Of a stretch of 64,000 bases of DNA, positions 13,739 through 47,036 are shown piece after piece (the first letter of the stretch is position 1; each line of letters begins with the position of its first letter). Under the pieces are notes generated by a model, which made no database searches, was not told the DNA's origin, and saw only the letters and a program-made list of their open reading frames with translations. A program made the position numbers and the translations under genes. The DNA is from Macrostomum hystrix (lineage: Eukaryota; Animalia; Platyhelminthes): positions 806,001 through 870,000 of the forward strand of contig CATNEN010000014.1 in assembly GCA_950097015.1 (NCBI GenBank), read 5' to 3'.

Positions 13739-14286
13739 ATCAGTTGCCTTTCAATGTGCAGCAGTCACTTTTTGTAGGCACTCGTTTTTTAAAACACACA
13801 CGACACGCAAAACTCCTAAAATAGCTCGTAGAAAGAATTGGCAGAGCACAAAATGAACAATTGCAAGAGGGCTGCGGGCAATGGCACATCATTTGGCGAC
13901 ACCAGAGCCGCAGCCAGCGAGGAGACAATTCGGCCCATTTTGCTGACTCCTGAGCACACCTACTCACACAGGTGTGTACACCTGCAATCAATTTCTCATC
14001 ATCAGGCAGTGTACACTGTCACTGTGCCTTGGAGGTTGGCCCCCAAAGGCGCAAATTGCACTACAAGCCCCAAGCCTAATCTCCGCGGCTGCGGCCCAAA
14101 TGAATGAGGCCTCACCATGGAATCGAGCTCAGGGAGCTTGGTGCGAGAGGCAAGCGCTTTAGACCGCTCTGCCTCTGAAAGTAATTCTAACCTGAGTTGT
14201 TCGGCAGCCAAGTGAAAAGTGAAGAATCCCAAGATTGGGTCAGATTCAAGAAGTCAAATCCCAGTTGACTGAGTACCCTGACCTAC

Positions 14287-14684
14287 TCATCCCCTAGAAC
14301 GCCACGACAACCGGCCTCGCCGCCACAGTCGCAGTCCTCGCCGTCTTCCAGAAGGCCGTTGCCGCAGACCGCTGTTGGCCAATCCGCGGCTACGTGCAGG
14401 CGAAGAAGCCCGCCCGGATAGTCAGCCTCTGGTCTCGGCCACAGCAGGCAGTGACGGACGCCGGAATCCAGGAAGTTCTTCAGGGCTTTCTTTGAGCAGT
14501 CCGACCAGCCGATGTTGTGCCACTTGCTGCGATTCAGCGTTTTGGGGTGCATCATGCAGGCCTCATTGGAGTCGTGACACCAGCAGTGGTCTAGGTAACT
14601 GGTATCGTAGTCGACGCCAAGGTTGTATGCCAGGTTCCGTGTCATCATCACCCCGGTGGTGTCGAAGTCGCTGGACGAATGAGA
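14287..14684 (-). CDS. ADAM A exon: reprolysin C-terminus with degenerate zinc motif, Met-turn and disintegrin start
   Basis: MTRNLAYNLGVDYD in place of xAHExGHxxGxxHD; CMMHP; CGNGLLEDGEDCDCG. Confidence 0.9.
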
Positions 14685-14769
14685 CTGGCGTGGGCAGTCG
14701 GAGATATTCGTAATATATAAAAAATTTTTATGTGAACCCAGATTTGGGAGCCTGCGGAACAAAGATTGG

Positions 14770-14950
14770 AGAGACTGGGAACAGATATTAGGGAGACTGG
14801 AAACAGAGATTAGGGAGACTCGGGAACAGAGATTAGGGAGACTCGGGAACAGAGATTAGGGAGACTGGAAACAGAAATTAGGGAGACTGGGAACAGAGAT
14901 TAGGGAGACTGGGAACACAGATTAGGGAGACTGGGAACCGAGAGTAGGGA
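14770..14950. repeat. 22-bp intronic minisatellite (gggagactgggaacagagatta); also ~34025-34135 and ~63350-63660
   Basis: Direct tandem units. Confidence 0.85.
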
Positions 14951-15088
14951 GGCTGGTGTGATAGATTTTGGGGAGGCTGTGGGATAAAGATTTGGGAGAC
15001 TGGAGATCGAGCGAAAAATTGAAAGAGAGTCTTCTCCTAACTCATTCTAATATAGGGATTAGTGGAAGCTAATTTGCTAGTTACTTAC

Positions 15089-15170
15089 GACACTAAAACC
15101 GACGCACTTTTTCCACATGCACATTCTATTCTTAGTGGCGTTGCCTGTCAGGCTGGGTCGATTTGTGGCT
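15089..15170 (-). CDS. ADAM A hypervariable exon 1
   Basis: ttcag|a GCC...GTC|gtaagt; ATNRPSLTGNATKNRMCMWKKCVGFSV, aligning to the reprolysin G-x-A-x4-MC segment. Confidence 0.8.
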
Positions 15171-15204
15171 CTGAAATTTGATTTGATAAAGTATAGTCGA
15201 TAAG

Positions 15205-15400
15205 AGAGTCTGGTAGACTGGAGTGTTTTGGATAAGAGAGTCTGGTAGACTGGAGTGTTTTGGATAACAGAGTCTGGTAGACTGGAGTGTTTTGGATAAG
15301 AGAGTCTGGTCGACTGTTTTGGATAAGAGAGTCTGGTAGACTGGAGTGTTTTGGACAAGAGAGTCTGGTCGACTGGAGTGTTTTGGATAAGAGAGTCTGG
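15205..15400. repeat. 32-bp intronic minisatellite (gagagtctggtagactggagtgttttggataa); also ~34520-34750
   Basis: Direct tandem units without spacers. Confidence 0.85.
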
Positions 15401-15512
15401 TATACATTAAACCATTGTCAATAAGATAGGAGTCTTTTGTAGAAGCCAATGTGCTATCGGCTGTAGTCTTGCACATAGACAGTGAGCACTCAAGGCTATC
15501 CAATCAGCTCAC

Positions 15513-15629
15513 GTAAGCACGTGCACACAGTCGTGGTCCTCGCCCCCAAAAATATGCTTAGAACTGTCCAAGGTATCCAGCGTTTTGTCCAAATCCCAAT
15601 TGAAGATGTCGAGATAGCTGTCATTAGTG
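15513..15629 (-). CDS. ADAM A hypervariable exon 2
   Basis: cttag|...|gtgag; TNDSYLDIFNWDLDKTLDTLDSSKHIFGGEDHDCVHVL, phase-compatible with the next exon. Confidence 0.75.
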
Positions 15630-15975
15630 CTAAGAATTTCCAGCGCGCTGACTACTACGTAGATGTCGAAGCGGCGAAAAAACTGCAGAAATATCGAAAA
15701 TATGCCTCTTATACTGCTTTCAGTACAGTGCGAAAAACAAACTGCAGCTTTATATATCCATAATATTTTATTTAGAATTTTTTAAGAGTGTAAAAATATA
15801 AACTGTATCATCTGTTAGACATGGGTATCGCATGTTAGACATGGGTATCACCCTCACCCTCATGAGTTTCACCTGTTAGACCTGTTAGACATGGGTGTCA
15901 CCCACAGATAATATATAACATCTATATATATAAAAGTGAAAACTCTGTCTGTGTGTGTGCAACCTTTTGTCTTTA

Positions 15976-18386
15976 TCTATATATATAAAAGTGAAAACTC
16001 TGTCTGTGTGTGTGTGTGCAACCTTTTGTCTTTATAGACGCCGAAACCGCTCAACCAAATCGCACCAAACTTTGCACATACCTAAAACCACCTACGCTGA
16101 GTGCAATAGGCTACTCAAATTCCCGAAAAATCATTTCCTTCCTGCTCAAAAGTGCAAATAACTGCTCAAAAATCGTCAAAAAATCACTCAATTCGACATA
16201 TCGTCGCCCCACTTTGTCAGATTTTCTCCAAATTTGATCCACTTACACTTTACATGTTTTCCAACAATGCTGTCAATTTTGAACATCTCTACTCAATCCA
16301 GAGCAAAGCTGCATCATCTCAAAGTGAGTCACTTTTTGTTTTCCGAGGACAGCCACCCCAACTCCCCTCCGCCACTCTGCGGGCCAAATTTTATTACAGC
16401 CACCCCCTCCCTTCCCCGGGCGCCGAAGCCCCAGACTGTACATTGTATTTCAAGCCGTGAATGTACACAGCCCAAACCCCTAGACTGTCTACTGGCCCCC
16501 AAGCAGCACTGAGACTGAGTGCGGTGAGTGCGGTGGCGTCCCAGTGCGCAGGGCTCTCTGGTCAATATTTCTCTCCAGCCAGCCTGGGATAGAAGAAAGA
16601 GAGAGGCTGGCGTACAGTGCTTTGCTAAAATACAAGACGGTTATCCGCTGTATCGACGGAGATCACGTGAGGATGGCGGCTTTACTACTCGCATTATTCT
16701 ATGCAGCCATGGGAATGAAGAGATCGATCTGGACAACAGATGGGTCGTTCCCTACTGCCCGCTACTGTCCAAGGTGTTCAATCCACACATCAACGTTGAG
16801 TACTGCAACTCTGTTAAATCAATCAAGTACATTTGCAAGTACGTGAACAAGGGTAGCGACCAAGCAGTGTTCAACATTGAGGGACCTGGAGGCATAGTAA
16901 ACGAATTTGACGAAGTCAATCGCTTCAAGAGCGGAAGGTATCAGCTCTAACGAGGCAATGTGGCGAATCTTCGGATTCTCTATTCATGAACGCCACCCAA
17001 CTGTCATGCACCTCAGTGTGCACCTGGAAAACGGTCAGAGAGTATACTTTACGGAGGAGAACATCCAGCAGCGTGCTCAAAGGCCACAGGACACTACTCT
17101 TACTGCTTTCTTCAAGTTGTGCGCTGAAGACCCCTTTGCCAGGACTTTGCTGTACCACCAGGTGCCTGCCTATTACACATGGAACGCCTCTTCGAAAGGA
17201 TGGAAGCGGCGGGTTCAAGGCGCTGCAGTTCCAGGCCATCCTGAAATACGACAGACTGATGCATTAGCCAGAGTACACGGTGCACCCAAACCACAGTGAA
17301 TGCTACTACCTGCTACACACCGTGATTGGTCCGACGTCATTTAGACACATTAGAACGGTGGAAGGCCATACCTGCCAAACTTTTCATGAAGCATGTCAGC
17401 GACTGGGACTGCTGGAAGAGCTGGATGACCAGGAGCAGCTGGGACAGTTCATAGAGGAGAATGAGCCCCGACTCATGCCTGAGCAGCTAGAGGCGTACCG
17501 CGAGCTATTGCGCAGAGTCAACAACAACGTTGGTGGCATGGTTTTTCTTGATGCTCCAGGTGGCACAGGAAAAAAATTTCTAATCAACCTCTTTCTGGCA
17601 AAGGTCAGGCAACGAGGCGACGTTGCCATTGCTGTAGCTTCCTCTGGAATTACAGCCACCTTGCTGCCAGGCGGTCGCACTGCCCACTCAGCACTGAAGT
17701 TGCCGCTTGATCTGTCTTGAGCGGAGAATCCGCTGTGCAACATCAAGAAAAACACAGGCACTGCCAGAGTGCTTCAGGCTTGCAAGCTTATCGTCTGGGA
17801 TGAGTGTACCATGTCCCACAAACTGGCATTTGAAGCACTCAACTTAACTTTGAAAGACCTGCGCAATAGCAATCAACTGATGGGTGGTGTCACTCTGCTG
17901 CTGTCTGGAGACTTTAGACAGACGCTGCCTGTGATTCCGCGAGGCACTCCTGCTGATGAGATTAATGCTTTCCTAAAATCATCTCACCTGTGGCCATCGG
18001 TTGTGAAGTTGCACCTACGAACAAACATGAGAGCTACAATTCAAGGAGACGAAACAGCTCATGAGTTCTCTGCCAATCTATTGCGAATCGGCAATGGTCT
18101 GCTGGAGATTAGCACAGAGAATGGGCAGTCATCGATCGCTACAATCGGAACCATTGTGCAGTCAGTGCAGGAGCTCAAGGCAAAAGTTTACCCGAACCTG
18201 ATGGTTCGATATACTGACGTTGACTGGCTGTCAGAGCCAGTACGCCCTTAAACAAACTCTTCACTTTTCATTCATGCAGTAAATAAATAAATGGTGACCT
18301 TCACTATAAAGTTAATACAGAGACGTGAATTGCTTACTGCTTTGCTTTAAATTTCTGCCCCAAAAACAACGGGCAAAAAAAGCTAG
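15976..18386 (+). mobile_element. Helitron derivative H2 (5' end + Rep motif 3 to mid-helicase + 3' end), preceded by a 55-bp 5' stub at 15921
   Basis: TC start, CTAG end; same 5' ~650 bp as H1 and H3. Confidence 0.9.
16633..18236 (+). pseudogene. Helitron RepHel middle part: Rep Y2 motif and Pif1-like helicase motifs
   Basis: DGYPLYRRR, KYICKYVNKGSD, SSNEAMWRIF, FLDAPGGTGK, LIVWDE, GDFRQTLPV; frameshifts near 16940 and 17275, stop at 17720. Confidence 0.9.
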
Positions 18387-19040
18387 TCTATATATATAAA
18401 AGTGAAAACTCTGTCTGCCTGTCTGTGTGTGTGTGTGTGTGTGTGTGCAACCTTTTGTCTTTATAGACGCCGAAACCGCTCAACCAAATCGCACCAAACT
18501 TTGCACATACCTAAAACCACCTACGCTGAGTGCAATAGGCTACTCAAATTCCCGAAAAATCATTTCCTTCCTGCTCAAAAGTGCAAATAACTGCTCAAAA
18601 ATCGTCAAAATATCACTCAATTCGACATATCGTCGCCCCACTTTGTCAGATTTTCTCCAAATTTGATCCACTTACACTTTACATGTTTTCCAACAATGCT
18701 GTCAATTTTGAACATCTCTACTCAATCCAGAGCAAAGCTGCATCATCTCAAAGTGAGTCACTTTTTGTTTTCCGAGGACAGCCACCCCAACTCCCCTCCG
18801 CCACTCTGCGGGCCAAATTTTATTACAGCCACCCCCTCCCTTCCCCGGGCGCCGAAGCCCCAGACTGTACATTGTATTTCAAGCCGTGAATGTACACAGC
18901 CCAAACCCCTAGACTGTCTACTGGCCCCCAAGCAGCACTGAGACTGAGTGCGGTGAGTGCGGTGGCGTCCCAGTGCGCAGGGCTCTCCGGTCGATATTTC
19001 TCTCCAGCCAGCCTGGGATAGAAGAAAGAGAGAGGCTGGC

Positions 19041-19658
19041 GTTGACTGGCTGTCAGAGAGGGCAATTCTGCGTCCTAGAAATGATGCCGCCAACGAAATT
19101 AACTACCAACTGCTTCAGGAGTTGCCAGGTGCAGTTTTCACCTACAAGTCAATTGATACAACGTTGACTGATGACACCGCTGTGGAGTATCCTGTTGAGT
19201 TTCTGAACTCTCTAGATCCTCCTGGAACTCCATCGCACAACTTGCAGCTGAAAGTTGGGGCACCAATTATGCTCCTCCGCAACCTGAATGCGCCAAGGCT
19301 GTGTAACGGCACCAGACTGATAGTCAGGCGGCTCTTCCCACACGTGATTGAGGCCACGATAATGACTGGATCTGGCAGAGGAGAGTCTGTGTTCGTTCCC
19401 CGGATTCCAATTATCCCCACGGACCTGCCATTTCAGTTCAAGCGACTGCAGTTCCCTGTGAGAGTGTGCTTTGCGATGACTATTAACAAGGCTCAGGGAC
19501 AGTCGCTGAAGGTGGCTGGCATCAACCTGGAGACTCCTTGCTTCTCGCATGGGCAGCTTTATGTCGCCTGCTCCCGTGTTGGAACTCCAGCTGGCCTATT
19601 CATTTTCGCACCAAGGGGAAGAACGAAGAATGTGGTGTATCCCCAGGCCTTGAGGTGA
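19041..19658 (+). CDS. Helitron Pif1-like helicase C-terminal fragment
   Basis: AILRPRN, LKVGAPIMLLRNL, RLQFPVRVCFAMTINKAQGQSL, FSHGQLYVACSRV. Confidence 0.9.
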   Translation, partial: VDWLSERAILRPRNDAANEINYQLLQELPGAVFTYKSIDTTLTDDTAVEYPVEFLNSLDPPGTPSHNLQLKVGAPIMLLRNLNAPRLCNGTRLIVRRLFPHVIEATIMTGSGRGESVFVPRIPIIPTDLPFQFKRLQFPVRVCFAMTINKAQGQSLKVAGINLETPCFSHGQLYVACSRVGTPAGLFIFAPRGRTKNVVYPQALR

Positions 19659-19810
19659 CTCGCAAGCAATTAATAGAAAAGTAGTCACGAATTGACCTTG
19701 ACCTGTCTAACTCTGAACTCTGAAACAGTTTAATTTTGTTTCTTTGACATTGTTATTGTTATGCCATGGCTATTTTCCTTATGTATACGCGTGTACATGC
19801 ATACTGTATA

Positions 19811-20071
19811 CAGAGGCAGATTTAGGGGGGGGGGTGGGCGGGGGGCAGTCGCCCCCCCCCAAAATTTTAATCATGGGAATAAGATGCCCCCACCAGGGGC
19901 GCCAGTCGCAGCACTGGCGCCCCTTTTCGGCCGCTGGCGCCCCTTTTTCAGCCGCTGGCTCCCGTTTTTCAGCCGCTGGCGCCCTTTTTCGGCCGCTGGC
20001 ACCCCCTCTGTGATTCTCATGGCGCTCCCCTGACAGACCGCCCCAAAACAAAATTCCTGGATCTGCCACTG
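19811..20071. mobile_element. hAT-type MITE in the Helitron 3' region
   Basis: TIRs cagaggcagatttagg / cctggatctgccactg; 8-bp TSD ACTGTATA (19803-19810, 20072-20079). Confidence 0.85.
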
Positions 20072-20236
20072 ACTGTATAGAGGAGTGGCTAATAGACATG
20101 TTTCTAAAGAAGTAATCAAGAGGGGGCTGTTTGGACAAACTTTTCACTTATTTTTTACTTAAAACGCCCTTAAACAAACTCTTCACTTTTCATTAATGCA
20201 GTAAATAAATAAATGGTGACCTTCACTATAAAGTTA

Positions 20237-20928
20237 TGTGGTGCCGGTGTCTCTGGCCTTGTGGTTTTGTTAGGCCTTCCTCACCCAACGCCGTCTTGGC
20301 TGCCCGGTGCCCGGTGCCGCCATCTGATTGGCTGGGCGCGGGCCTTGTGTGCCTATCCTACCCCAGCCCTGCGTGGCTTTGCCCTCACGCCAATCAGCTC
20401 TGCGTAGCTTTGCCCGTCCACCCGTCCAGCGCGTACAACCCAACCCCCCCAGCGCGCTGTAGGCTTTGTTTGTGCTCCGCCCATGTCTGCCCCCTTGTCA
20501 GCCCTTAAGGTATCGTTTTCTGCCCGGGCCAAGGCTACCTCTCTCCCCCCTTGCGAACTTTAAAAGATCGTGCCGTAAAGACGGTCTCTTACTGCGAAGG
20601 CTCAATTTATTGCATAGCGAAGTGATTATTGAATAGTGATTCCGAGTGCATGGTTTATTAAAGTGCAAAAATTGCCGACAAATACATTCAGCGTCATCCT
20701 GCCATCCTATCGTGCGTCCCGACCGGTAAGCACTGTATTTGTGTCTGTCCTTTCGGGGTGCCAGGTCCGCACGGAGTACTGTAATAATCTTAGAAGTACT
20801 GTGTGAGCGTCCTAACGCCACCAGTCCCTGACTGCAACAGAGCGTCCTAACGCCTGGTTCAGTGATCGATAATATTTTACTTAATAGGGCTGTCGGCCGG
20901 GGATCTCAAACCGACCACTGTCACTACA
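20237..20928. mobile_element. Solo LTR (Gypsy-like), 692 bp
   Basis: TGTGGTG...CACTACA termini; 4-bp TSD GTTA; interrupts the Helitron 3' sequence aagttaatacagag seen intact at ~7100 and ~18310. Confidence 0.8.
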
Positions 20929-21034
20929 GTTAATACAGAGACGTGAATTGCTTACTGCTTTGCTTTAAATTTCTGCCCCAAAAACAACGGGCAAAAAAAG
21001 CTAGTATAATATATAAGTTATATATTATCTGTGG

Positions 21035-21270
21035 TGTCACCTGTTAGACATGGGTATCACATGTTAATGACCCTCACCCTCATGGTTTTCACCTGTTAGA
21101 CCTGTTAGACTTGGGTATCACCTGTTAGACATGGGTATCACCTGTTAGACGTGGGTATCACCTGTTAGACATGGGTATCAGCTGTTAGACATGGGTGTCA
21201 CATGTTGGACATGGGTGTCACATGTTAGACATGGGAATCACCTGTAAGACATGTGAATCACCTGTTAGAT
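21035..21270. repeat. 20-bp intronic minisatellite (cacctgttagacatgggtat); also ~15810-15902 and ~35200-35610
   Basis: Direct tandem units. Confidence 0.9.
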
Positions 21271-21607
21271 ACTATACTCACGTTGTTGACGATTCCAATA
21301 ATGCTCTGTACCGCATCAATCACAACCGATGAGCTCATGGAGTGCATATTGTACTGCAATGAGAAGTGAGCAGCTGGACTATTACTCTAGTAAAGTTATT
21401 TTTTGGACCTAAAAAAGGGCACGTCTTTTAACATCGGAAACGCTAATCGTTGCTAAGGCCCTCTAGTATCCATGGTTACCCCAATGGCAAACAAATTATC
21501 TCTTAATTTGCATAACATCTCGCACAGCATTAGAATCTCGAGCAACGAGCAAGCAAAACAGTTTGCAATATTAAAAACTGTCTTGACCACTTTACTTCGA
21601 TTGCCTC

Positions 21608-21745
21608 GCCTAATGTCTATGGTACACCCACATGACCTGGCCTAATGTCTATGGTACACCCACATGACCTGGCCTAATGTCTATGGTACACCCACATGAC
21701 CTGGCCTAATGTCTATGGTACACCCACATGACCCGGCCTAATGTC
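21608..21745. repeat. 32-bp intronic minisatellite (gcctaatgtctatggtacacccacatgacctg); also ~35950-36150
   Basis: About 4 units in A and 6 in B. Confidence 0.9.
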
Positions 21746-22814
21746 AATGCTTCTCCCTCAAGTCTTTCCAAAGCTAGTCGCTACTGTTATTATATGCTAT
21801 ATTAACATCAAATTATAAATGTTACACTCACAAACCAATAATCAGCGATGATGTAGAGCTGCATAATGAATGGGCCGCCACTACTGATCACCTTCCTGCT
21901 CAGCTTTATAAACCGGGTCTCGGACTTTGCTAAGCGCCGGTGCCTCTGTATTTGAGTTTGGATCGAGCAAGCAAAGGCGAGTAGAATTAACGGAATTGAT
22001 TCAGTCAGTCTGTCTGTGTTAGCTTGATCAGTCCATGGACTGGGTGCCGTCACACTCACTCAAATTTCTATCCGAGCTAATGCTGCTAATGCTGCTAATG
22101 CGGTTAGGAGTCCGAAACTCTGCGCCAAAACCTCATGAGCATACGCTTTCAATGTTGGGTCACCAAGAAGCATAGAATTTGCAAAGCTAAGCCTCATCTA
22201 TATAACTCTTGATTTTTAACTGGCTAACATGATCAAGCTGAACAGCAACTTGACACTTGAATGGCACCAGTCATAAATACTTTTGCTATTCTGCCCCATT
22301 CTATCTGTTGGTCAGCTTTATCAACAATGGGAACAGCCATCCATCTGACATTATCCTTAATCCTTGGGATATAGAATAGTGACTCATAGAATAATTAGTC
22401 ACTTTCAAAATTGGGCTCTTGAACTTTATTAATCCAAATAATGGCTTACCTGTAATAAAACGCTGCCACCAAGCATTTTGGTCAGTTGCTGTGGACTTAC
22501 TGGAAGTTATGGTGAAACCCATCTACTTATTCATTGAGCATCTCAATATATTTCTAAAGTGATGTGAATGAAAGCAAAAATCATACTCACGTGCAGCAAT
22601 CCGCTTATTCAGCACATCATAGGCCGATTCCAATGCTTGACGCTGCTTCCAACCGACACTTGAAGGATACAAGTTGAGCTGGTACACCTGCCAGCTTGAG
22701 TCACGCAGCCGCATGCGATGCCCGGTGGCTTGAATATAGCCCAGGTGAGTGATGTTGATTGACAGCGTGCCACTGTCAATGAGGGTTTGATTCAGCTGCC
22801 CGGGTAAATGATCT

Positions 22815-24330
22815 GCATGGCTGTCTGTTCTGGGCTGTCTGTTCTGGGGTGTCTGATCTGGGGTGTCTGTTCTGGGGTGTCTGTTCTGGGCTGTCTGTTC
22901 TGGGCTGTCTGTTCTGGGGTGTCTGATCTGGGGTGTCTGTTCTGGGGTGTCTGTTCTGGGCTGTCTGTTCTGGGCTGTCTGTTCTGGGCTGTCTGTACTG
23001 GGCTGTCTGTTCTGGGCTGTCTGTTCTGGGGTGTCTGTTCTGGGGTGTCTGTTCTGGGCTGTCTGTTCTGGGCTGTCTGTTCTGGGGTGTCTGTTCTGGG
23101 CTGTCTGTTCTGGGCTGTCTGTACTGGGCTGTCTGTTCTGGGGTGTCTGTTCTGGGGTGTCTGTTCTGGGGTGTCTGTTCTGGGCTGTCTGTTCTGGGCT
23201 GTCTGTTCTGGGGTGTCTGTTCTGGGCTGTCTGTTCTGGGCTGTCTGTTCTGGGCTGTCTGTTCTGGGGTGTCTGTTCTGGGCTGTCTGTTCTGGGCTGT
23301 CTGTACTGGGCTGTCTGTTCTGGGCTGTCTGTTCTGGGCTGTCTGTTCTGGGGTGTCTGTTCTGGGCTGTCTGTTCTGGGATGTCTGTTCTGGGGTGTCT
23401 GTTCTGGGCTGTCTGTTCTGGGCTGTATGTTCTGGGGTGTCTGTTCTGGGGTGTCTGTTCTGGGGTGTCTGATCTGGGCGGTCTGTTCTGGGGTGTCTGT
23501 TCTGGGGTGTCTGTTCTGGGGTGTCTGTTCTTGGCGTCTGTTCTGGGCTGTCTGTTCTGGGCTGTCTGTTCTAGAGTGTCTGTTCTGTGGTGTCTGCTCT
23601 GAAGTGTCTGTTCTGGGGTGTCTTTTCTGGACTGTCTGTTCTGAACTGTCTGTTCTGGGCTGTCTGTTCTGGGCTGTCTGTTCTGGGCTGTATGTTCTGG
23701 GCTGTCTGTTCTGGGCTGTCTGGGCTGTCTGTTCTGGGCTGTCTGTTCTGGGCTGTCTGTTCTGGGCTGTCTTTTCTGGGGTGTCTGTTTTGGGGTGTTT
23801 GTTCTAGGGTGTCTGTTCTGTGGTGTCTGCTCTAAAGTGTCTGTTCTGGACTGACAGTTTTAGGCTGTCTGTTCTGGTATGTCTTTTCTGACGTGTCAGT
23901 TTTGGGGTGTCTGATTTGGGTTGTGTATTTCTGGGGTGTCTGATCTGGGTGTCTTCTGAGGTGTCTGTTCTCGGGAGTCAGTTTTGCATGGCTTTCTGTT
24001 CTGGGCTGCCTGTTCTGGGCTGTCTGTTCTGGGGTGTCTGTTCTGGGGTGTCTGTTCTAGGGTGTCTGTTCTGTGGTGTCTGTTCTGTGGTGTCTGTTCT
24101 GAGGTGTGTATATCTGGGGTGTCTTTTCTGGGATGTCTGTTCTGGGCGTCTGTTCTGGGCTGTCCGTTCTAGGCTGTCTTCTGGGGCGTCTGCTCTGGGG
24201 TGCCTGCTCTAAGGCGTCTGCTCTGGGATGTCTAAACTGCATGGCTGTCTATTCTGGGCTGTCTTCTGGGTGCCTGATCTGGGGTGTCTGATCTGCATAT
24301 CTGTATGTTCTTGAGTGTCTGTTCTGGGTG
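22815..24330. repeat. 14-bp minisatellite (tgtctgttctgggc), ~100 units in A and 4 in B
   Basis: Direct tandem units; compare 37249-37305. Confidence 0.95.
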
Positions 24331-24769
24331 TCCATTCTCACCGCAGCAGGTCAGAGCAGAGTGACACAAGGCCTGGCTGAGTCACATTGCCCAACTGGGC
24401 AGTCCCAGACTCAATCGGCCACGCTGAGTAGTGGCACTGAGAGCGATGTCGCGATTTGGTGGCCTGGGATCGACTCCCCACGATTCGAACTGGGAACTCT
24501 TCAGGTCTGGAAAAGTATTTAACAAAGAGCTGCTACAAAGGGGATTGCAGCAATGGGTCGTATTCGAGCTTCATCAAAAAGTATAAAAGTGCATTTGTGC
24601 TTACCTTCTCACCGCCAGGTAGAATGAGAACCGGCGCAGCGATGGCATAGCAACAATCTCTAAGACCAAATTTCTGCCGATTTTCTGAAGCGGTAAAATC
24701 GAACTCACAATTTTGAAAACATTGAAACAATTTCAAGCCTCCGGTGTGTACCAGCTGGAACAGCCTTCT

Positions 24770-25245
24770 GTCGACAGGGGCAACCTTCTACTGATAGGGC
24801 AACCTTCCACGAACAGGGCTATCCACTGACAGGGCTACCTTCCACTGACAGGGCTACCTTCCACTGACAGGGCTACCTCCCACTGACAGGGCAACCTCCC
24901 ACTGACAGGGCAACCTCCCACTGACAGGGCTACCTTCGACAGACAGGGCTAACTTCCACTGACAGGGCTAACTTCCACTGACAGGGCAACCTTCCACTGA
25001 CAGGGCAACCTTCCACTGAAAGGGCAACCTTTCACTGACAGGGCAACCTCCCACTGACAGGGCTACCTCCCACTGACAGGGCTAACTTCCACTGACAGGG
25101 CAACCTTCCACTGACAGGGCAACCTTCCACTGAAAGGGCAACCTTTCACTGACAGGGCAACCTCCCACTGACAGGGCAACCTCCCACTGACAGGGCAACC
25201 TCCCACTGACAGGGCAACCTCCCACTGACAGGGCAACCTTCCAAT
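24770..25245. repeat. 20-bp minisatellite (ccactgacagggcaaccttc) upstream of ADAM; also ~37630-38035
   Basis: Direct tandem units. Confidence 0.9.
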
Positions 25246-26064
25246 GAGGCTCAACCACTCAAATCAACAAAGATTCATATGTAGGCTTCACCTTCTAGCC
25301 TTTTGTTGGTGCAAGATTTTAACGCAATGAGGTTAGTAACAGTACGAGTGGTGGCATTTGATGGCACAGAACATATGCATCTGTTCCAATTTGCTCATCG
25401 TTAACGATTGTGCACACTCGCTTTAATTTTAGCCCAACAATACTAAATCTCTAAAATGTTTTCTTGCTAAAAAGGTTTAGTTCAATCATTTCAGATTTTG
25501 CTTACCCGGCTTGGCTGAACTTCCTGACCATCGTTGGCCTGAAATGTTCTCATCTTGGCCAGCAAGGTTAATGGCCTGGTTGAGTCCGCTGAAATTGCAG
25601 TTGAGAAGGCTAGAAATTCAGTGGCAATCATTGCTTTTGTAGCTTTCCAGCTTGTATTTTGTAAAATATGCTCGCTAATTACTTTTGAATTGTGTTGTCA
25701 TTTCAAATAATGCATTTAAAACTGAGCACACTCAAAATAGTTAAAAGGATTGTGAGTACTCACCAATTGCGCAGTTGGAACACAGCAGGATGATAAATTT
25801 AGCTATTAATGTGATACAAAGAAGGCTATGGAGTTCACTGGCATGACTTATTGGCATGTTTACACAAAAAGTTGTAGCGATTCAACCAGTGGAATAGTCA
25901 ATCGTCAATGTATATAAAATTCCTGCAATTTGAAACCCGATGTATATAGTTTCAGGATTGGAAAGGCTCATAGACTAAAACAGCGGGCACGGAAAGTCGA
26001 TTTGTGCCCGCTGCCGGGGGATTTCGTCTATGTCCAAAGCAACGGAAATATTGCTGCAAAGCCA

Positions 26065-26215
26065 AGAAATCATTAGAGAGCTGCTATCTATTGATGCAAG
26101 GGATGGAGGGATGAGACTCAGCGGCAGAAAGCTGCGTAAAGACAATCATTCCGAACAAGTTTTGGACAAATCGAGATGAGACATTAAGAAACTTGAGCAT
26201 GTCCTTAAAGTCCGC
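26065..26215 (+). mobile_element. Diverged fragment related to the LINE at 51.4-55.6 kb
   Basis: gagactcagcggcagaaagctgcg.aaagacaatcattccgaa...ggacaaatcgagatgagac matches ~53025-53110. Confidence 0.7.
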
Positions 26216-27944
26216 TCGCACCGGCGGGACACAACGCCTGTGAGGTATGAGTCAGTCCAGGCCCACGGGCTAAGGTCTGCGATGCCTCACACCTGCGCAG
26301 TCGCTCTTTGAGCAGGCTTGGCAGGAAGCATCCCTGTGCCTTCGGGTGCAGGAATCCCTCCACGCTGTCCCGTCAGCTGATCCATGAGTACACGTGCAAC
26401 GAGTGTTCAATTAAAACTCGTTCGCCACAAATGGAAAACAACTTTTCTAATAGATCTTGATGTAACTCTTATTCGCCACTAATTGTTTCAAGCAGCTTTG
26501 TTACTTATAACTTATTACTTATAACTTATTACTTACTTATTACTTTATAACTTGGTCTGGTCGTTCAAAAAAGCAACTTCGGCTTATAACGGGTTTATGA
26601 GCGGTTTATAAGCCCCTACGATAAGAGATTTATACGAAAGCTTTCGCCGTTTTTTAATTCTGTTAGAACACAACTGCATACATTTAAAACATATTTTTTA
26701 ATCAATTTCTGTTGCAAGATACATTTTCTGGGCAAGCAAAATGTGTATATTTTAACAAAAATCATACTTTCTTTTCACCAATGACCAAAACAGTAGTCGA
26801 TAGTTTCGCCGTTTTAAAAATATAAAAAAGCGAGGCTTAATTGATGGATTTTTATTGCATTCACTTTTTCGCTAGCTTTTATTATCATATATCTGAACAT
26901 TTTGTAATGTAGGCAATAACGAGCTTCATCGGCAGCAATTTGTTTTTAAGAGTCCGGAAAGACTAAAGATAAATCTGTTAAAAACAGCTGTAAATTTTTC
27001 ATTCAACTTGATTACAAATTAATTTCTGCGCATTTTAATTATAAAACAAAAAATTCTTGCATTCTTGTATAACACTTGTTTTAGTTTTGTTTCCATGACG
27101 CAAAGCATGACCACGATTTCCAGTTTGGTTTGACTTGAAGATTATATAAAATATTATTACCTGAATTATTTAGTTCGTTTTAATTATTTTTTTCTCCTAT
27201 GTATGCATGTAATAAACTGGATGTAATGAAATATAAATGCTATTAAATTGATAATGTAACATGCTAACTGTGAAAACAGTTTTTCAATTTAAAACGTACT
27301 AATACCTTATATCATGTCTATTATACGAATATCGTAATTCTAATAAGAATTGTTTGTTTGATTCCTTGATGATTCTTTATATAAATGTAGTCCTGTATTA
27401 TAATTTAAACGGGCTTACTTAAACTCGTAGTTGCAATTCTTGCGCGGCAAAAAGTTGTTGTATAATTGGCTAGTCTCGATTGCAGTAATAGTCCAGTAGG
27501 CCAATTAATAAGAAATGTGCATTATTAAGTAGTAAAATACCGATTGTTAGTTGTCATATTATTATGCAGATTTTTTTATAAATTAATCATTTTGTTCATT
27601 GTAGTGGCTGTCTAGTTGTTTTAGAATATTTACAACTGTATTTACCATATTGCCATGTTGTTTTTGGCCCTGTCTTATTAAAAAAGGATAATATATGCCA
27701 ATTGTTGCTAATGCTAATTGGCCATGAGCGACTAAATTATATTAACAGTATAATACAGGAAACATGTAATACTTTTCTCTGGTAAAGCGATAATTTATTT
27801 TATAATTTTCACTTTTAGTTCACTTCATAAAAATACTCTAGTGGAAATTTAGCCAGACTAAAAATAAAAAACTTTAAAAAGATCGCATTTTTCCTTTCTC
27901 ACTGCTCTAAGTTAATTGGCTTCACTATTCATCTACAGATTCAT

Positions 27945-28203
27945 TAACTAATTCATCAACAGAATTATCAACAGATTCATCAACAGATTCATCAACTGAT
28001 TCATCAACTGATTCATCAACTGATTCATCAACTGATTCATCAACAGATTCATCAACTGATTTATCAACTGATTCATCAACTGATTCATCAACTCATTCAT
28101 CAACAGATTCATCAACAGAATTATCAACTGATTCATCAACAGATTCATCAACAGAATTATCAACAGATTCATCAACTAATTCATCAACAGATTCATCAAC
28201 TGA
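27945..28203. repeat. 12-bp satellite (attcatcaactg)
   Basis: Direct tandem units. Confidence 0.9.
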
Positions 28204-28268
28204 TGTACTCATCTAATCTACTCCACTCTACTCTATTAGCAGATCTAATCTACTCATTCCTTCCCTTC

Positions 28269-28577
28269 TCATTTTTCTTTAGCAATTTTCCCCATCTCTT
28301 GTGGATGTGCTCTGTCATTGCCAGCCTTCACAGCTGATGCAACTCCACCGGCTACACCTCCTGCAGCACCAAGAGCACCTGCGATGATGGGGATGAGTGT
28401 TAGCAAAGGAAGAATCCCGCCTGTCTTCTCATCAGTGTTATTGTGTGTTTGATTGTTACAATGGATTTGATATTGAATTGGATCTACTTTCACTGTCGTA
28501 CCTTTAATTTGCACAACACCGGGTTTCTTAGAGTCGATAATTCTGTTGATTTTATTTACTGTTTTGGTTTCAATCAT
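28269..28577 (-). CDS. Polinton/adintovirus-type small core protein with an adenovirus pX-like GG-LP-LIPIIA motif
   Basis: GGILPLLTLIPIIAGALGAAGGVAGGVASAV resembles adenoviral pX GGFLPALIPIIAAAIGA; adjacent to a Polinton integrase. Confidence 0.6.
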   Translation of the reverse strand: MIETKTVNKINRIIDSKKPGVVQIKGTTVKVDPIQYQIHCNNQTHNNTDEKTGGILPLLTLIPIIAGALGAAGGVAGGVASAVKAGNDRAHPQEMGKIAKEK

Positions 28578-28611
28578 TTTATTTAAACAATTTTAACGAA
28601 TTTCTGAATCA

Positions 28612-30040
28612 TGTGGAATCACAGTCTTTTTCTAGCCCTTCAGGTAAGTAAAGGAAGCGAACGAATTCAAAGTTAGTAAGAATTTCTGGAGAATATAGTC
28701 CTGCTTATTTAGGAAATGGTGACTGACTACTTTTAGTTGTGTTATTAGTATCAAGTAGGCGGTCTTGCTTAATTGCTGTAGAAGGCTTTGGTCCAGGCAC
28801 TTCTATATATAGCAATTTGGACTGGCGACGAAAATAAAACGGTGCCCCGGTTATACGCTAGTGTGGCAAGGCATTTGGGTCTAGCTAAAAAATCTATGTT
28901 ATCTGTTTTCGAGTTGAAGGGGGAAACAGGAGGGTTGGGAAGGGGCGGGTGGGGAAGGGGGTAGGAGAGTGGGGTCAGGGGGGCCTGTACATTCCAGGAA
29001 ATGTACAGGCTTGGATGTTCAAGCATTGCGGAAGAGTATATAATGCCTTACATCTGCCTGGCAGAAGATTTTACCGTCACCGATGGAGCCAACGGACTAC
29101 CACTGAAATCAAGCTTGTTTAGCGACCTACTGTCTGAAGGCAAGGCTTCGACTCTCAGTCAGCTGTTGAATCTCATGTCGAGAATCAAGAACTGGGCTGA
29201 GGATTTCAGCAAGACCGAGTCGGCACCTGAAGCCAAGGCTTCCAGTCTGTTGGATGCGGTGCAGGATCTTTTGGAGGAGGCAAAAGGGCTAACGGAAAAT
29301 CGTACCGTAGGTTTTGCCTTGAAGCAGCTGAAGTTAAGCAGGAAGCCTTTGCGTTCCAGGAGGTACTCCGAGGATCTCGTTGTGTTCTCCTACCTGATCT
29401 ACTCCACCAGTGCTTCAGCATACAAGAACATGCTTGATCAAGATGCCATCGGCCTTCCATCTGATCGCACGCTGAGGTCCATCACTGCTCGAGTTGGATC
29501 TTCAAGCGGCCTGGATATCGAGGGCTACCTTGCTCTGAGAGCTTCTAAGCTGTCTCAGCCGGAGATTGCTATATATAGAAGTCCCTGCTTTAGTCCAGTC
29601 ATTCGAGAAATTTCATTATTGAGTTGATTTATTACAGCTGGGAGCCGGTCTGCCCACTTGGTATAGTATTGGCCACTGTTTAGTTTCAGCTGTTCAGCTG
29701 TCTGCTTTGTGAAAAGTCTCTTTGCTAAAGTTAGATTGAATTTTTCAACAAAAGCCTGCAGTCTCTATGGAGCTCAGTTCTTCCGTAGCGTATTTTCGCA
29801 TTGTTCTTTTCCATCTAGCTTTTAACTGCCCCCATGAATTCTTTGCCGGGATCAGTCATAAAGGTTTGGGGTATGTGAGTGAGCGGAGAGTTTTTGTAAA
29901 TGTCTCGGAGGGCAGCTGCAACAGCTGCATCTGATTTCTTAGTCTTAAGTGGTCTCGCATCTTTGTATCTGGAGGCAATGTCTATAACTGTGAGCGCATA
30001 CTTGTAGCCTGAGTCATTGGGGAGAAACAGCTAGAAGGTT
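28612..30040 (-). pseudogene. Polinton/Maverick retroviral-type integrase, interrupted by a P-like element
   Basis: Hand translation: GYKYALTVIDIASRYKDARPLKTK...MTDPGKEFMG...INQLNNEISRMTGLK|PSTAI...VRFLYLPEG; several stops. Confidence 0.85.
28794..29587 (+). mobile_element. Non-autonomous P-element-like transposon with a transposase fragment
   Basis: TIRs CAGG(C/G)ACTTCTATATATAGCAAT; 8-bp TSD ctttggtc/ctttagtc; ORF part RRYSEDLVVFSYLIYSTSASAYKNM...LPSDRTLR resembles the P/THAP9 transposase N-terminal region. Confidence 0.8.
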
Positions 30041-30328
30041 CAGAGCATTATCGAGTAGAGTCGCGTTGTTGTTCTTGTGTTGAGGTTATCGAGATTTTGT
30101 TAAGTGAGTTACCAGTGCGAATTGTGAATTGAATATTGAATTGAATCAAGTACAGTACCTGGCAGGGGAATTAATCGTTCATTGCTTTCTCTTGTTAACT
30201 AATTAACACTTAAATATCAGCTGTTTAGCTTGGGCTTTTGAATCGTCTTGTCTTCGTTATTTTCGAGTTACGGCAATAGAGTCTCTCGCAAAGAGTAGGA
30301 CACCCGACCTCATTTAGGAATCTCAACG

Positions 30329-32013
30329 AGTAGTAGGAGTTAGCAGAACCCTGCCGACACTGCGGAGATAGGAGGCTATCTCGCCAGTGTATTTTGGAGT
30401 GTGGAGGGGCGCCGAAAATCTCAGAACAGAGGAGGAATGGGATAGGAGGAAAGCATTGGGGTGGGGTGGGGTGTGTCGTCCAATCCGAGACTGGAGGGTG
30501 TAGAGGCATGGGGTTGGTGGGTGCCTGTGTCACAGTGCAGGGATGAACTGATGGGATGCCGGCCTATCTGCTATAGCAGAACCCTGCCGACACTGCGGAG
30601 ATAGGAGGTTGCCCGGCAGTGTATTTTGGAGTTTGGAGGGGCGCCGACAATCTCAGAACAGAGGAGGAATGAGATAGGAGGAAAGCATTGGGGTAAGTGT
30701 AGGGTGTGGCGTCTAATCCTACTTACCTACATATCTAGTTTAAGCTCCATCACAGGACAAACACCCACCCCAACTCTAGCCAATCAGAATCGAGCACACA
30801 TTTTGGATGGTATATAACCCCTCAAAAATCGTTAGGAAAGGAGCAAGTTTTCTCAGCTCGTAATTTTTCTGATCTTAGCTTTTGACATTAGCTAGCGATG
30901 GACATCTGCGACGGTTGTAAGATTCAGATTCAAGAGTACGAAGGCTTGAAGTACATAGCGATAAGAAAGTTCTACCGCCACGGCAGCACTGCAAGTCTGA
31001 AACCTGGCGTCCCTGGCTTCAACCTGAATGTTTGCCAATGGGAAAAGCTGAAGCAACTGAAGCGGTCGCTCGTAGTGTCTGCTCTCAAAAGCGAGTGCAA
31101 GGTGGTGAAACTAGGCTTTGATAAGTTTATCGAAGTCAGGGATGGCATCATCTGGCTCAAGCGGCTGCCTGAGGACTGCTGCGAGGAGTTCATGAAGCGT
31201 AACGCCGTACCGCTGACCCCACCGCTGTGGAAGAAGCTGTGGCACAACGCATCATGGATATAGACGGCCAGTTGTCAGCTCCCTTCAAGGACATGCGGAC
31301 GAAGTACGAGCTGGAGTCAGATGAGGAAGAGCAGGACACGAAGCCCGTCCTGGAGGCCGAGAAACCTGAAGGCAATGGTGGAGACGAAGACGAGATCGGC
31401 TCGCCTAGAATGCTGCAGATCGACAACGAGGCTGCCACATCCACGCCGCTTCCCGTGGCTAGCGCTGGGGATGGACGGATCCCGTCTCGGGACTCGGACT
31501 TGCGGGAGGTTTTCATTTGAAAAATACTGCGCGGCGGCGTCGGCAGGGTTCTGCAAACAGATAGGCCGACACCCCATCTGTATATTCCCATGCCTCCTAT
31601 CTCCACAGTGTCGGCTGTGTCCTCTGCTGTGGAATAGGCAGCGCCTATAGGCAGAGCAATGGAAAGTGTGGCAAACTAGCGAAAACAAAACGCATACAGA
31701 TTTGCCAGGCATCCCATCTTTGTATTCCCGTGCCTCCTATCTCCACAGTGTCGGCAGGGTTCTGCTATAGCAGGTAGGCCGGCATCCCATCAGTTCATCC
31801 CTGCACTGTATACACAGGCACCCACCCACCCCATGCCTCCCCACCCTCCAGTCTCGGATTGGACGACACACCCCACCCCACCCCAATGCTTTCCTCCTAT
31901 CCCATTACTCCTCTGTTCTGCGATTTTCGGCGCCCCTCCACAATCCAAAATACACTGGCGAGATAGCCTCCTATCTCCGCAGTGTCGGCAGGGTTCTGCT
32001 AACTCCTACTACT
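30329..32013. mobile_element. Mini-Polinton (non-autonomous Maverick), 1685 bp
   Basis: AGTAGTAG...CTACTACT termini, ~280-bp TIRs, 6-bp TSD TCAACG; single-copy empty site at 60367-60372. Confidence 0.9.
30898..31263 (+). CDS. PC4-like (ssDNA-binding) domain protein
   Basis: YIAIRKFY...LKPGVPGFNLNVCQWEKL fits the PC4 IR-x-Y...PG-x-KG-x-L...W pattern; possible second degenerate repeat. Confidence 0.65.
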   Translation: MDICDGCKIQIQEYEGLKYIAIRKFYRHGSTASLKPGVPGFNLNVCQWEKLKQLKRSLVVSALKSECKVVKLGFDKFIEVRDGIIWLKRLPEDCCEEFMKRNAVPLTPPLWKKLWHNASWI

Positions 32014-32234
32014 TCAACGCAAAGAGAGACCTAAGTCAAAATATCAGAAGCGCATACAATCCTGAGCCGAGGCCGGACAACGGAATTTTGCGTCACATTG
32101 AAAGTTTCCATAACTGAAAAACGAGCGAACATTTCTATTCAACGTCATTTGTCCTTCAAAACATTAGAATTGCATTTGAGTCATTGCATTGTTTGCAAAA
32201 TTTAAAGGCTGCATTTTCAGACTAAGGCTGTGAC

Positions 32235-35200
32235 CTAGTAGACGGTGACTGCGGCGGCTGCCAAGCTGGCCAGGCTTACCAGGATGGCGGCGGAAACTCC
32301 GCCAGTTCTCTGGCCGTCACTAAACGGTCCGGGCGGACCGCTGTCGATGCTGCCACCGTTGCCGGCCAATTGGCAGTCGGGCGGGGCGAATCCTGGCGGA
32401 CAGTGGCAGTGGCCGCGCGAGTTCACGGTGCCACCGTTTTGGCAGGTGACATTGCCAGCCACAGCGGCTCGGTTACGAATCTCCGAGGCGGATTGGCAAG
32501 TACTGTTGAAGCACATTTGCTCGCCGGTACGGTTTCCGCAACGCGCACCGTCTGGCACTCGATCGGGCGGCCCGGGTACCCGCGGATGGTAGCCGCAAAT
32601 GGCATTGCCGCAAGGTTCTGGACCTGTCCCGGTTATATCCGGAACGCAGTTCGCCAAATTCTCAATCGGGTGCACAAAGGTGCCGCACGTTACCATATCA
32701 CATTCCTTGCTTTTTTTCGGGCACCAGGAACTCTGCAAGCAGTGGAGAAGTGTGATGTGTTGCTAAAAAGTGAACTAGAAAGCGAATCGGAATCGCTCAG
32801 GAAGAGACACAATAAATAGTGAGGTGAGCTTGACGGCTGACTTAAAAGGCAGTCAATATCGTTTTGCAGGAAAATAAGCAATTCAATCAAAGTGAATAAA
32901 AAGGGTTAGTAGTTTTAAGAGTTTCCGAGAATGAGGGAATTCCTCTGACTCACGGCATCCCGTGCCGTCGGTCCCCAGAGTAACTGACACTGAGTCTGGG
33001 CGGAGCCGCACAGACCGTTGGCGCAGAAGTTGTTGCCGCACGGTGTCCCGTCTCTGGCAGCGAAATCGGCAGGGCAGGTTGAGTCGACGCCGTTACAGAA
33101 TTCCGGCAGGTCGCATTGTCCTTTGGCGGCGCGGCAAACGGTGCCAGTCGGGTGCGGCTGACAGACCGTCAAGTCGCAGCAGCGCCCCGCGGCGCAGGCA
33201 GCGGATTCGGCCAGCTTGCAGGAGGTGGCGTTGCAGCAGTCGTTGCCTCTGTGAAACGATTGGTGAGCAGATAACTAACGACTTGTTTGCTACCTCTGAC
33301 ACAAAGCTCGAGACTTTGGATCTTCTTAGTTACGAAATAGATGAAAGAGTTGTAGAAAAAAGAATCGATATTGCACGAAATTCACTTGGCACCGCCGAAG
33401 CTATTCTACAACGTGGGATTCTACAACGTAATTAATAGGTGAAAGTAATTCTAACCTGAGTTGTTCGGCAGCCAAGTGAAAAGTGAAGAATCCCAAGATT
33501 GGGTCAGATTCAAGAAGTCAAATCCCAGTTGACTGAGTACCCTGACCTACTCATCCCCTAGAACGCCACGACAACCGGCCTCGCCGCCACAGTCGCAGTC
33601 CTCGCCGTCTTCCAGAAGGCCGTTGCCACAGACCGCTGTTGGCCAATCCCGGGCTACTGGCAGGCGAAGCCCGCCCGGATAGTCAGCCTCTGGTCTCGGC
33701 CACAGCAGGCAGTGACGGACGCCGGAATCCAGGAAGTTCTTCAGGGCTTTCTTTGAGCATTCCGACCAGCCGATGTTGTGCCACTTGCTGCGATTCAGCG
33801 TTTTGGGGTGCATCATGCAGTCCTCATTGGAGTCGTAACAATAGCAGGGGCCTTGGTATTTGTTATCGTAGTCGACGCCAAGGTTGTATGCCAGGTTCTG
33901 TGTCATTATCACCCCGGTGGTGTCGAAGTCGCTGGACGAATGAGACTGGCGTGGGCAGTCGGAGATATTCGTAATATATTCAATATTTTTATGTGAACCC
34001 AGATTTGGGAGCCTGCGGAGCAGTGAGTAGGGAAACTGGGAACAGAGATTAGGGAGACTGGGAACAGAGAGTAGGGAGACTGGGAACAGAGATTAGGGAG
34101 ACTCGGGAACAGAGAGTAGGGAGACTGGGGAACCCAGTATAGGGAGGCTGGTGGGATAGATTTTGGGGAGGCTGTGGGATAAAGAATTGGGAGACTGGAG
34201 ATCCAGCGAGGAATTGAAAGAGAGGGTACTGGTCTCCCAATTCATTTTAATGTAGGGATTAGTGTCCTCTGCTGGAAGCCAGTTTGCTAGTTACTTACGA
34301 CGGTAAAACCACTGCACTCTCTCCATTTGCACATGCTATTCTTAGTGGCTGCGCCTCCGTAGCTGTTGGTGTTGTACCTTTTGCCTCTAAAATTTGAGTA
34401 GATAAAGGTTTTTCTATAATTTTTGTCAATGCAGACGTAATTTTTTTCCGACAGAAGTGTCTAGTAGATGGGAGTCTACTCGAGATGAATGAGAGTCTGG
34501 TAGGTTAAAGTATTGTCCATAAGAGAGTCTGGTAGACTGGAATCTTTTGGATCAGAGAGTCTGGTAGACTGGAGTCTTTTGGATCAGAGAGTCTGGTAGA
34601 CTGGAGTCTTTTGGATCAGAGTGTCTGGTAGACTGGACTCTTTTGGATCAGAGAGTCTGGTAGACTGGAGTCTTTTGGATCAGAGAGTCTGGTAGACTGG
34701 ACTCTTTTGGATCAGAGTGTCTGGTAGACTGGACTCTTTTGGATCAGAGAGTCATTATCAATAAGATAGGTGTCTTTTGTAAGTATTGTGTAGTCTTGTA
34801 AGTCTTTTGTAGAAGGCAATGTGCTATCGGCTGTGGTCTTGCACATAGACACGGAGCACTCAAGGCTATCCAATCAGCTCACGAAAGTACGTGCACACAG
34901 TCGTAGTCCGTGAGATAGAAACTCGGCGTTGCTTTTATATATTTATTCACTAATTCCAGCATGTCCTCTACAGTACTAAAGTGGAATTTGGCGAAACTGA
35001 AGTCAGGAACTGTACGGCTTGTGTGAATTTCCAGCGCGCTGACTACTACGTAGATGTCGAAGCGGCGAAATAACTGCAGAAATAGCGATAAAAATGCCTC
35101 TTATACTGCTTTCAGTACAGTGCGAAAAACAAACTGCAGCTTTATTTATCCATAATATTTTATTTAGAATTTTTTAAGAGTGTAAAAATATAAAATGTAT

Positions 35201-47031: not shown

Positions 47032-47036
47032 CCAGC

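Follow-up and report, generated by a model that had tools for sequence, protein, structure and literature searches.

An unalignable coding patch inside one exon of otherwise near-identical ADAM paralogs of the flatworm Macrostomum hystrix

In snake-venom gene families, including those of metalloproteases, isoforms differ radically in short segments within exons, whereas their introns and the adjoining parts of the exons are conserved, a pattern described under the name ASSET (PMC2474615, PMC2711939). Cysteines and fold are preserved, and the changed segments have been proposed to lie on the surface; neither recombination nor splicing shifts nor the accumulation of point mutations was judged satisfactory, leaving the mechanism unknown (PMC2474615, PMC2711939). 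A second kind of system is represented by exon 7 of RHD/RHCE (Innan's model) and by the protocadherin clusters, in which duplicates are kept alike by non-allelic conversion except for one exon region encoding an exposed surface, selection or heterology maintaining the diverged exon inside otherwise converted duplicates (Ohta 2010, PMC3966226). Here we describe a locus that recalls both, located in a window of 64,000 nucleotides (nt) of the Macrostomum hystrix genome (contig CATNEN010000014.1, positions 806,001 to 870,000). In this window, two tandem paralogs of an ADAM-family gene, designated A and B, are 98-100% identical across ca. 7 kb of non-repetitive blocks, yet a patch inside one of their exons, designated Z, is unalignable between them.

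As in ASSET, a short exon segment is radically different here while the flanking exon parts and introns are highly similar. Not all patches are as distant from one another as those of A and B: among the paralogs, named A to I, the pairs A-B, A-D and B-D are unalignable, but other pairs are significantly related, and intermediates exist. Further differences from the venom genes concern the host, a flatworm in which most copies are catalytically dead, and the domain involved, since venom metalloproteases are reported to switch segments in the hypervariable region of their cysteine-rich domain and in the spacer, whereas here it is the protease-like domain that varies and the disintegrin and cysteine-rich exons are conserved. 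Graded intermediates and direct evidence of paralog exchange also set this locus apart from ASSET. With the RHD/RHCE type it shares a reticulate flank history and a divergence peak that includes synonymous sites, but the island is much smaller (34-49 codons), unalignable and sharper-edged, and several islands occur per gene.

Catalytically dead ADAMs act as binding proteins, and ADAMs of the mammalian testis evolve fast. The present genes resemble inactive ADAMs such as ADAM22 (PDB 5Y31/3G5C) in having lost HExxH while keeping the fold-defining cysteines and the Met-turn, but the closest database proteins share only about 36-53% identity with their clade. The nearest of these is an ADAM of Macrostomum lignano (PAA73542.1, BOX15_Mlig005741g1), whose relatives of solved structure include ADAM22; unlike the clade, it retains its zinc site intact (HELAHNLGSGHD) and has a long cytoplasmic tail. 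This protein is 53% identical over the catalytic exon and is one of only two that reached E<1e-10 in a HMMER search over 1.84 billion representatives; the family is therefore regarded as a lineage-specific expansion.

All comparisons among paralogs rest on one genome assembly, the 220-Mb assembly from which the window was taken. With exon Z and its flanks as query against the whole genome, 12 paralogous places sharing both were found. Five of them (E, A, B, C and D) are in tandem on the window contig, while F is found on contig C39, I1 to I4 (in tandem) and G on C38, and H on C24. Copies A and B are encoded on the minus strand, in a duplicated unit that extends from about 12300 to 26100 for A and from about 32170 to 38860 for B. 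Along this unit, 50-column windows are mostly identical at 47-50 of 50 positions, and the overall identity falls to 94.5% once minisatellite stretches are counted. The island that holds the patch (15531-15640 in A and 34901-35030 in B) scores 21-23 of 50, and the other low windows correspond to minisatellite indels and to a milder downstream island in exon W. Segment by segment over ca. 7 kb, copies A-F are 94-100% identical to B, and the G, H and I copies 74-94%.

The order of the predicted domains is ADAM-like (propeptide, reprolysin-like, disintegrin, cysteine-rich and EGF-like). The catalytic exon matches Pfam Reprolysin (PF01421) with E=2.6e-10 for A and 1.5e-11 for B, and Pfam Disintegrin (PF00200) is matched above its cut-off (E=1e-15). 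PF08516 (ADAM_CR) scores 27-28 bits, just below its cut-off of 29.4 bits, because only its first 36 positions fall in the disintegrin exon. The zinc consensus HExxHxxGxxHD is absent from both genes, A having TRNLAYNLGVDYD and B TQNLAYNLGVDYD in its place; HELAHNLGVxHD is retained in H and I1-I4 but lost in G and A-F, which all keep the Met-turn and the cysteines. Judged on these motifs, A and B are ADAM-family members by descent that are predicted to be unable to act as usual zinc proteases. The six near-identical copies A-F form one clade with a dead zinc site.

The limits of exon Z differ from those proposed in a sequence-only reading of the window, which had drawn attention to one ADAM exon of A and B said to be unalignable between nearly identical introns. 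Both peptides quoted there do occur in a minus-strand frame, although the positions given for them were one base out of frame, and the two cores indeed share their phase and are both open. Downstream, the flank is a real intron that starts with GT and is near-identical between the copies, but the upstream "intron" is coding: the frame reading ...DCVHVL stays open through it and is predicted to encode an ADAM beta-strand, LFRRFDIYVVVSALEI (...YVVVSALEI), that aligns to LVGLEIW of solved structures of ADAMs and snake-venom metalloproteases and of the Macrostomum ADAM. The AG acceptors that had been proposed for the 5' limit fall inside the variable stretch, are not conserved and have no equivalent in copy D. 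Instead, an acceptor ...TTTCTGCAG/ (the slash marks the exon limit), placed directly 5' of LFRRF, is conserved in 12 of 12 paralogs. The patch begins 48 nt downstream of this acceptor, and the exon start proposed earlier 53 nt (A) or 56 nt (B) downstream of it; its phase is compatible with the preceding exon. Exon Z in its corrected limits (Table 1) is thus predicted to enclose the variable part entirely, and an annotation using the earlier limit would drop the conserved beta-strand.

With the M. lignano protein as a guide, in which the relevant stretch reads ...ADRDF YAIHNSNVESVVAATQNIINFVNN RFRSFNLHIAVTGLEIW..., three successive exons X, Y and Z were found whose joins are all in phase 0. Exon X ends in ...ADYWF/GTGAGT, and exon Y (72 nt) encodes YKMHSGSLSAVIHAVQSIIGIVNN between CAG/ and /GTGAGT. 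The translations of exons Y and Z match the M. lignano ADAM with no gaps at the exon joints (ADRDF/YAIH...FVNN/RFRSF...), which fixes the gene model. Those of exon Z align end to end to its residues 285-341 (E=1e-6 for A and 4e-6 for B), and the M. lignano protein itself aligns to the segment LVGLEIW ... HDNAQLLTG of VAP1 (PDB 2ERO). For exon Y, 10 of 24 residues were found by eye to be identical to YAIHNS...FVNN of the M. lignano protein; a BLASTP search of that protein with the 24 residues, a query too short for the purpose, gave no match, and exon Z by itself had no Pfam match either. AG/GT limits were found for six exons (X, Y, Z, W, the catalytic exon Cat and the disintegrin exon Dis), which are open in all copies within the fetched 10 kb.

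Two other readings of the upstream flank were rejected. An acceptor further upstream (AAAGCAG/TA or CTGCAG/TTTG) had been prompted by an open frame ...SSIRGIFSLFLQ and a weak Pfam match (E=0.13), but was discarded because D and I1-I4 have an in-frame TAA there and B a 1-nt insertion, and because the true helix-A exon (Y), whose phases match, turned out to lie 550 nt upstream. The conserved intron flank was also considered as a sign of a structured RNA or RNA gene, an idea that was discarded (fold z-score 0.09, no Rfam match). The 35-40 nt located 5' of the exon Z acceptor (15683-15720 in A and 35074-35112 in B) read in frame ...SSIRGIFSLFLQ and mimic the end of helix A; they are possibly a vestige of an older exon arrangement.

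Within exon Z, the patches of A and B align globally no better than chance (z=1.1, 36 of 300 shuffles being as good; 48% identity when the alignment is forced), so that the unalignability described in the sequence-only reading is borne out. The patch measures 102 nt in A, 123 in B, 129 in C, 102 in D, 147 in E, 144 in F and 114 in G, H and I, and all 12 patches are stop-free with a length that is a multiple of 3. Compared at the DNA level, they range from clearly related (z=22.7 for B-F, 16.9 for B-E) through still significantly alike (7.1 for B-C, 6-7 between B and the G/H/I type) and weakly alike (about 4 between A and the I type) to barely or not alignable (at most 2.4 between A and any of B-F, at most 2.5 between D and any other copy, and at most 1.5 for A-B, A-D and B-D). 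Relative to B, E and F show point changes and small in-frame tandem duplications, of 9 nt in E and of 11 and 10 nt in F. In clade A-F, identity over the whole of exon Z is 71%, as compared with 98-99% for the introns flanking exons X and Dis and for the flank 3' of Cat. It is in this dead clade that the divergence and length changes of the patch are extreme, the active-type copies having a constant 114-nt patch. Both patches of the A-B pair are diverged versions of one ADAM segment, neither being foreign, since they share their homologous segment in the M. lignano ADAM; as a loop plus helix following the LVGLEIW strand in the alignment to VAP1, the patch would be placed on the molecular surface.

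The abrupt passage from about 98% to random identity is what had suggested a cassette swap, that is, replacement of the exon core in one step by a short conversion tract from a distant paralog. Gene conversion is indeed active in this family (see below), and the immediate flanks, which are 94-99% identical across subfamilies on different contigs, could be homology arms. These flanks do not stand out as uniquely conserved cassette borders, a role for which they were considered and rejected, other 100-nt blocks of the gene being also 97-100% identical between subfamilies. No donor was found in the 220-Mb assembly. The patch of A has no genomic match but itself, at either the DNA or the protein level, and that of B matches only the same exon of F (78%) and of E (87% over part), two copies with flanks 96-98% identical to those of B. 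Searches of the whole genome, at the DNA level with each patch and at the protein level with exon Z of A, recovered the 12 cognate exons only and no near-identical donor, although a donor may exist outside the assembly, on another haplotype or in a lost paralog. The graded series of patches, with its intermediates, also speaks against a swap, as does the recurrence of similarly sharp edges where the next exon begins and, in milder form, within the catalytic exon, which would call for several independent swaps per copy. We consider a swap quite unlikely and the donor-cassette version the least supported: gene conversion is a shaping force here, but what was observed speaks for the reverse of a cassette imported from a donor.

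Exon Z is not the only scrambled exon, contrary to what had been proposed. Behind a conserved ...TTTCAG/ acceptor, the first ca. 35 nt of exon W are equally scrambled between A and B, with a length difference of 6 nt, and this variable part corresponds to the loop after the DCVHVL strand. Exons X and Y contain milder variable stretches, as does the catalytic exon, both where it begins and just past the dead zinc site.

The proportions of synonymous (pS) and non-synonymous (pN) differences bear on how the patch arose. In the patch, where the values are alignment-based and rest on 24-27 synonymous sites per pair, pS and pN are 0.205 and 0.172 for B-E, 0.166 and 0.194 for E-F, and both 0.2-0.33 for pairs among G, H and I. 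The ratio pN/pS is 0.8-1.2 in nearly all alignable pairs and never significantly above 1, and amino-acid-directed positive selection was therefore rejected as the sole cause. Within A-F, the pS of the patch equals or exceeds that found between subfamilies elsewhere in the gene (0.075-0.22), while the conserved ends of exon Z show 0 synonymous changes at about 15 sites. Since the synonymous sites of the patch are strongly diverged, it cannot be explained by ordinary point mutation at the pace seen in the flanks. The sequence-only reading was right on this point, but its exclusion of gradual divergence is in part contradicted by the intermediates, which make a graded series. The patch is either much older than its flanks look or is mutating much faster. 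Elsewhere in clade A-F, the disintegrin exon (pS 0.023, pN 0.008) has a ratio of non-synonymous to synonymous rates (dN/dS) of 0.36 and is under purifying selection. For the catalytic exon (pS 0.044, pN 0.086), dN/dS is 2.0 when taken from pooled, non-independent pairs, and A-B alone shows 16.5 non-synonymous versus 1.5 synonymous differences (estimated P about 0.07).

Direct evidence points to exchange among the copies. Along the gene, the groupings of A-F favoured by informative sites conflict with one another (AF, AC, AD, ADE, BE, BF, CD, DF and others), and 305 of 535 site pairs are incompatible. By the four-gamete test, a minimum of 7 and 11 exchange events is required in two blocks of about 1.5 and 2.5 kb, in which neighbouring sites are more compatible than when permuted (P=0.0005 and P=0.07, respectively). 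In addition, the 5' exon part of D carries synonymous variants of the G/I type though its gene body is A-F-like, and the 3' flank of C, again with an A-F-like gene body, differs from I1 at 1 of about 100 positions and from B at 6. The history of the paralogs around the patch is reticulate, with non-allelic exchange.

Concerted evolution with conversion-resistant islands is the explanation that we favour for the A-B pattern, with a probability of roughly 0.55; it is preferred to a turnover of the patch in place because of this exchange and because pN/pS is about 1. Frequent gene conversion or unequal exchange among copies would keep the introns and most exons 98-99% alike while sparing a few short stretches of the protease-like domain, the largest being the loop-plus-helix between the LEI and DCVH strands in exon Z. 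The spared segments would be the least constrained, and probably exposed, parts of a dead protease-like domain, having diverged too far, in-frame indels included, for a heteroduplex to pass. Conversion tracts would then end at the island edges and the flanks would be homogenised up to the heterology, hence the razor-sharp limits. Inside the island, synonymous and non-synonymous sites would diverge at a similar rate within the limits set by an open frame and a weak helix pattern, and small tandem duplications would change its length. Blocked conversion, rather than a local mutator, would thus cause the contrast between patch and flanks, and the variable surface would be a putative binding site under relaxed or diversifying selection.

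Several points weigh against this explanation. The saturated patch pS of A-B and B-C needs lineages older than the split of paralog H (pS 0.16-0.29 elsewhere); this objection of depth lifts if H has also been partly homogenised, but a local mutator explains the depth equally well. The edges of the patch are sharp to 1-2 codons, whereas under classical models of conversion the divergence should decay over tens to hundreds of bases. Finally, the selection signal is weak, positive selection on the catalytic exon being only suggestive, with A-B alone not significant. From one genome, the account based on conversion-resistant islands and one based on fast turnover are not fully separable.

Fast turnover, which we regard as a tentative second possibility, would be of the ASSET type: the copies would be young, with 1-2% neutral divergence, and the patch would have been rewritten in place far faster than its flanks by clustered mutation, by replication slippage with small duplications and deletions and possibly by positive selection. 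The in-frame tandem duplications that distinguish E and F from B fit such a process, as do the enrichment of internal k-mer repeats in F, E and marginally D, the very sharp limits of the patch and the presence of a minisatellite in every intron of the protease-like region, which makes the surroundings slippage-prone. The similarity to the published venom families and the dN/dS of the catalytic exon in A-F, where synonymous divergence is near the intron level, point in the same direction. However, the repeat enrichment, significant in F and E, is found in a control exon as well and was dropped as proof of slippage, and A, B and C have no internal repeats. Turnover in place would need a more than ten-fold local rise in mutation over exactly 100-150 nt, and we know of no germline process with such an effect. 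With a patch pN/pS of about 1, amino-acid-directed selection alone is insufficient, and the flanks, having been exchanged among copies, look younger than their real age.

It is highly unlikely that the stretch is not spliced in, or that the copies are decaying pseudogenes with a patch of unconstrained DNA, although the dead zinc site in A-G and the pN/pS of the patch would both be compatible with this. Despite six length classes, the 12 patches are open and in frame, for which the chance, with five independent types, is about 1e-4 (no stops) times about 0.004 (frame). None of the six examined exons is disrupted in any copy, their splice sites are canonical, and the disintegrin exon has the dN/dS expected of purifying selection. 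Unconstrained DNA, moreover, could not outpace the adjoining introns in divergence.

A more speculative idea is that a dedicated germline diversification process rewrites defined surface segments of the dead-protease scaffold and so produces a variable recognition repertoire. We regard this as improbable; candidate processes might be local error-prone repair or slippage seeded by the minisatellites on either side of each exon of the protease-like domain, or templated switching from sequences outside the assembly. The minisatellites (units of 22, 32, 20 nt and others) occupy the same place in all paralogs and differ in copy number. Those that bracket exon Z within 110-125 nt could seed slippage or exchange. 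In A, the array of the Y-Z intron is interrupted at about 15950-21050 by an insertion of ca. 5 kb that is absent from B. This insertion holds a 660-nt sequence twice in inverted orientation (15973-16632 and 18387-19042), which is found again at 9375-10036. The locations of exons, patches and minisatellites are given in Table 1.

Table 1. Predicted exons, hypervariable patches and minisatellites of the ADAM copies, in window numbering (a slash marks an exon limit).
Feature	Coordinates	Strand	Description
Copy A, exon Z	15513-15682	-	170 nt, phase 0 in, 2-nt overhang out; predicted FFRRFDIYVVVSALEI beta-strand, hypervariable loop plus helix, DHDCVHVL; AG/GT limits, 12-paralog acceptor
Copy A, hypervariable patch in exon Z	15533-15634	-	102 nt, 34 codons
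Copy B, exon Z	34883-35073	-	191 nt, phases as in A
Copy B, hypervariable patch in exon Z	34903-35025	-	123 nt, 41 codons
Copy A, exon W	15089-15170	-	82 nt; 12-paralog alignment, conserved AG and GTAAGT
Copy B, exon W	34299-34386	-	88 nt
Copy A, exon Y	21282-21353	-	72 nt, predicted helix A of protease-like domain; CAG/.../GTGAGT in 12-paralog alignment
Copy B, exon Y	35626-35697	-	
Copy A, exon X	21832-21945	-	Propeptide end with RHRR, then start of protease-like domain GPFIMQLYIIADYWF
Copy B, exon X	36239-36376	-	In frame, 24 nt longer than that of A
Copy A, exon Cat	14287-14684	-	Predicted dead zinc site TRNLAYNLGVDYD, Met-turn, disintegrin start
Copy B, exon Cat	33551-33945	-	Predicted dead zinc site TQNLAYNLGVDYD
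Copy A, disintegrin exon	13079-13373	-	Pfam Disintegrin E=1e-15; 98.6% identical to B
Copy B, disintegrin exon	32954-33248	-	
Copy C, third paralog	61648-63906	-	Cut by window end; Dis 61648-61942, Cat 62895-63292, W 63825-63906
Copy C, exon Z	64322-64518		Just past window end
32-nt minisatellite, Z-W intron of A	15199-15402		About 110 nt downstream of exon Z; counterpart in B at 34522-34753
20-nt minisatellite, Y-Z intron of B	35197-35612		About 22 copies; about 125 nt upstream of exon Z
Other minisatellites	14740-14956, 34001-34151		Also 22926-24476 in A

Outside the genes, a satellite with a period of 12 nt is found 3' of each ADAM copy (55746-58650, 27827-28204 and 12092-12246); downstream of copy C it is expanded to about 3 kb. 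The 3' flanks of B and C (28700-30130 versus 58750-60175) share stretches whose six-frame translations are 98-100% identical, from which it follows that the duplicated unit of the B-C pair reaches well past the gene. From about 3265 to 6300, the window contains a 3-kb tandem array rich in guanine and cytosine (GC, up to 68%) with long open frames of a Pro/Cys-rich repeat (...PPCCPTLPAVPPSLLSH...) on the minus strand, which may be coding or only a minisatellite. An 8-kb block at 42000-50000 has a GC content of 58-66%, compared with 40-50% in its surroundings, and shows internal repeats, 41412-41717 matching 50020-50340.

Overall, these genes offer a very clean natural case of a multigene family in which near-identity extends even to the introns, yet a few dozen codons can diverge beyond recognition. 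Having 12 copies at graded distances from one another, this genome could help to separate conversion that stops at heterology from a local mutator, a question that was left open for the venom ASSET cases. For Macrostomum, the data point to a lineage-specific expansion of dead ADAMs in which the former protease domain carries a variable surface, and the putative function to be expected of it would be binding or recognition, as in gamete or partner interaction, adhesion or defence.

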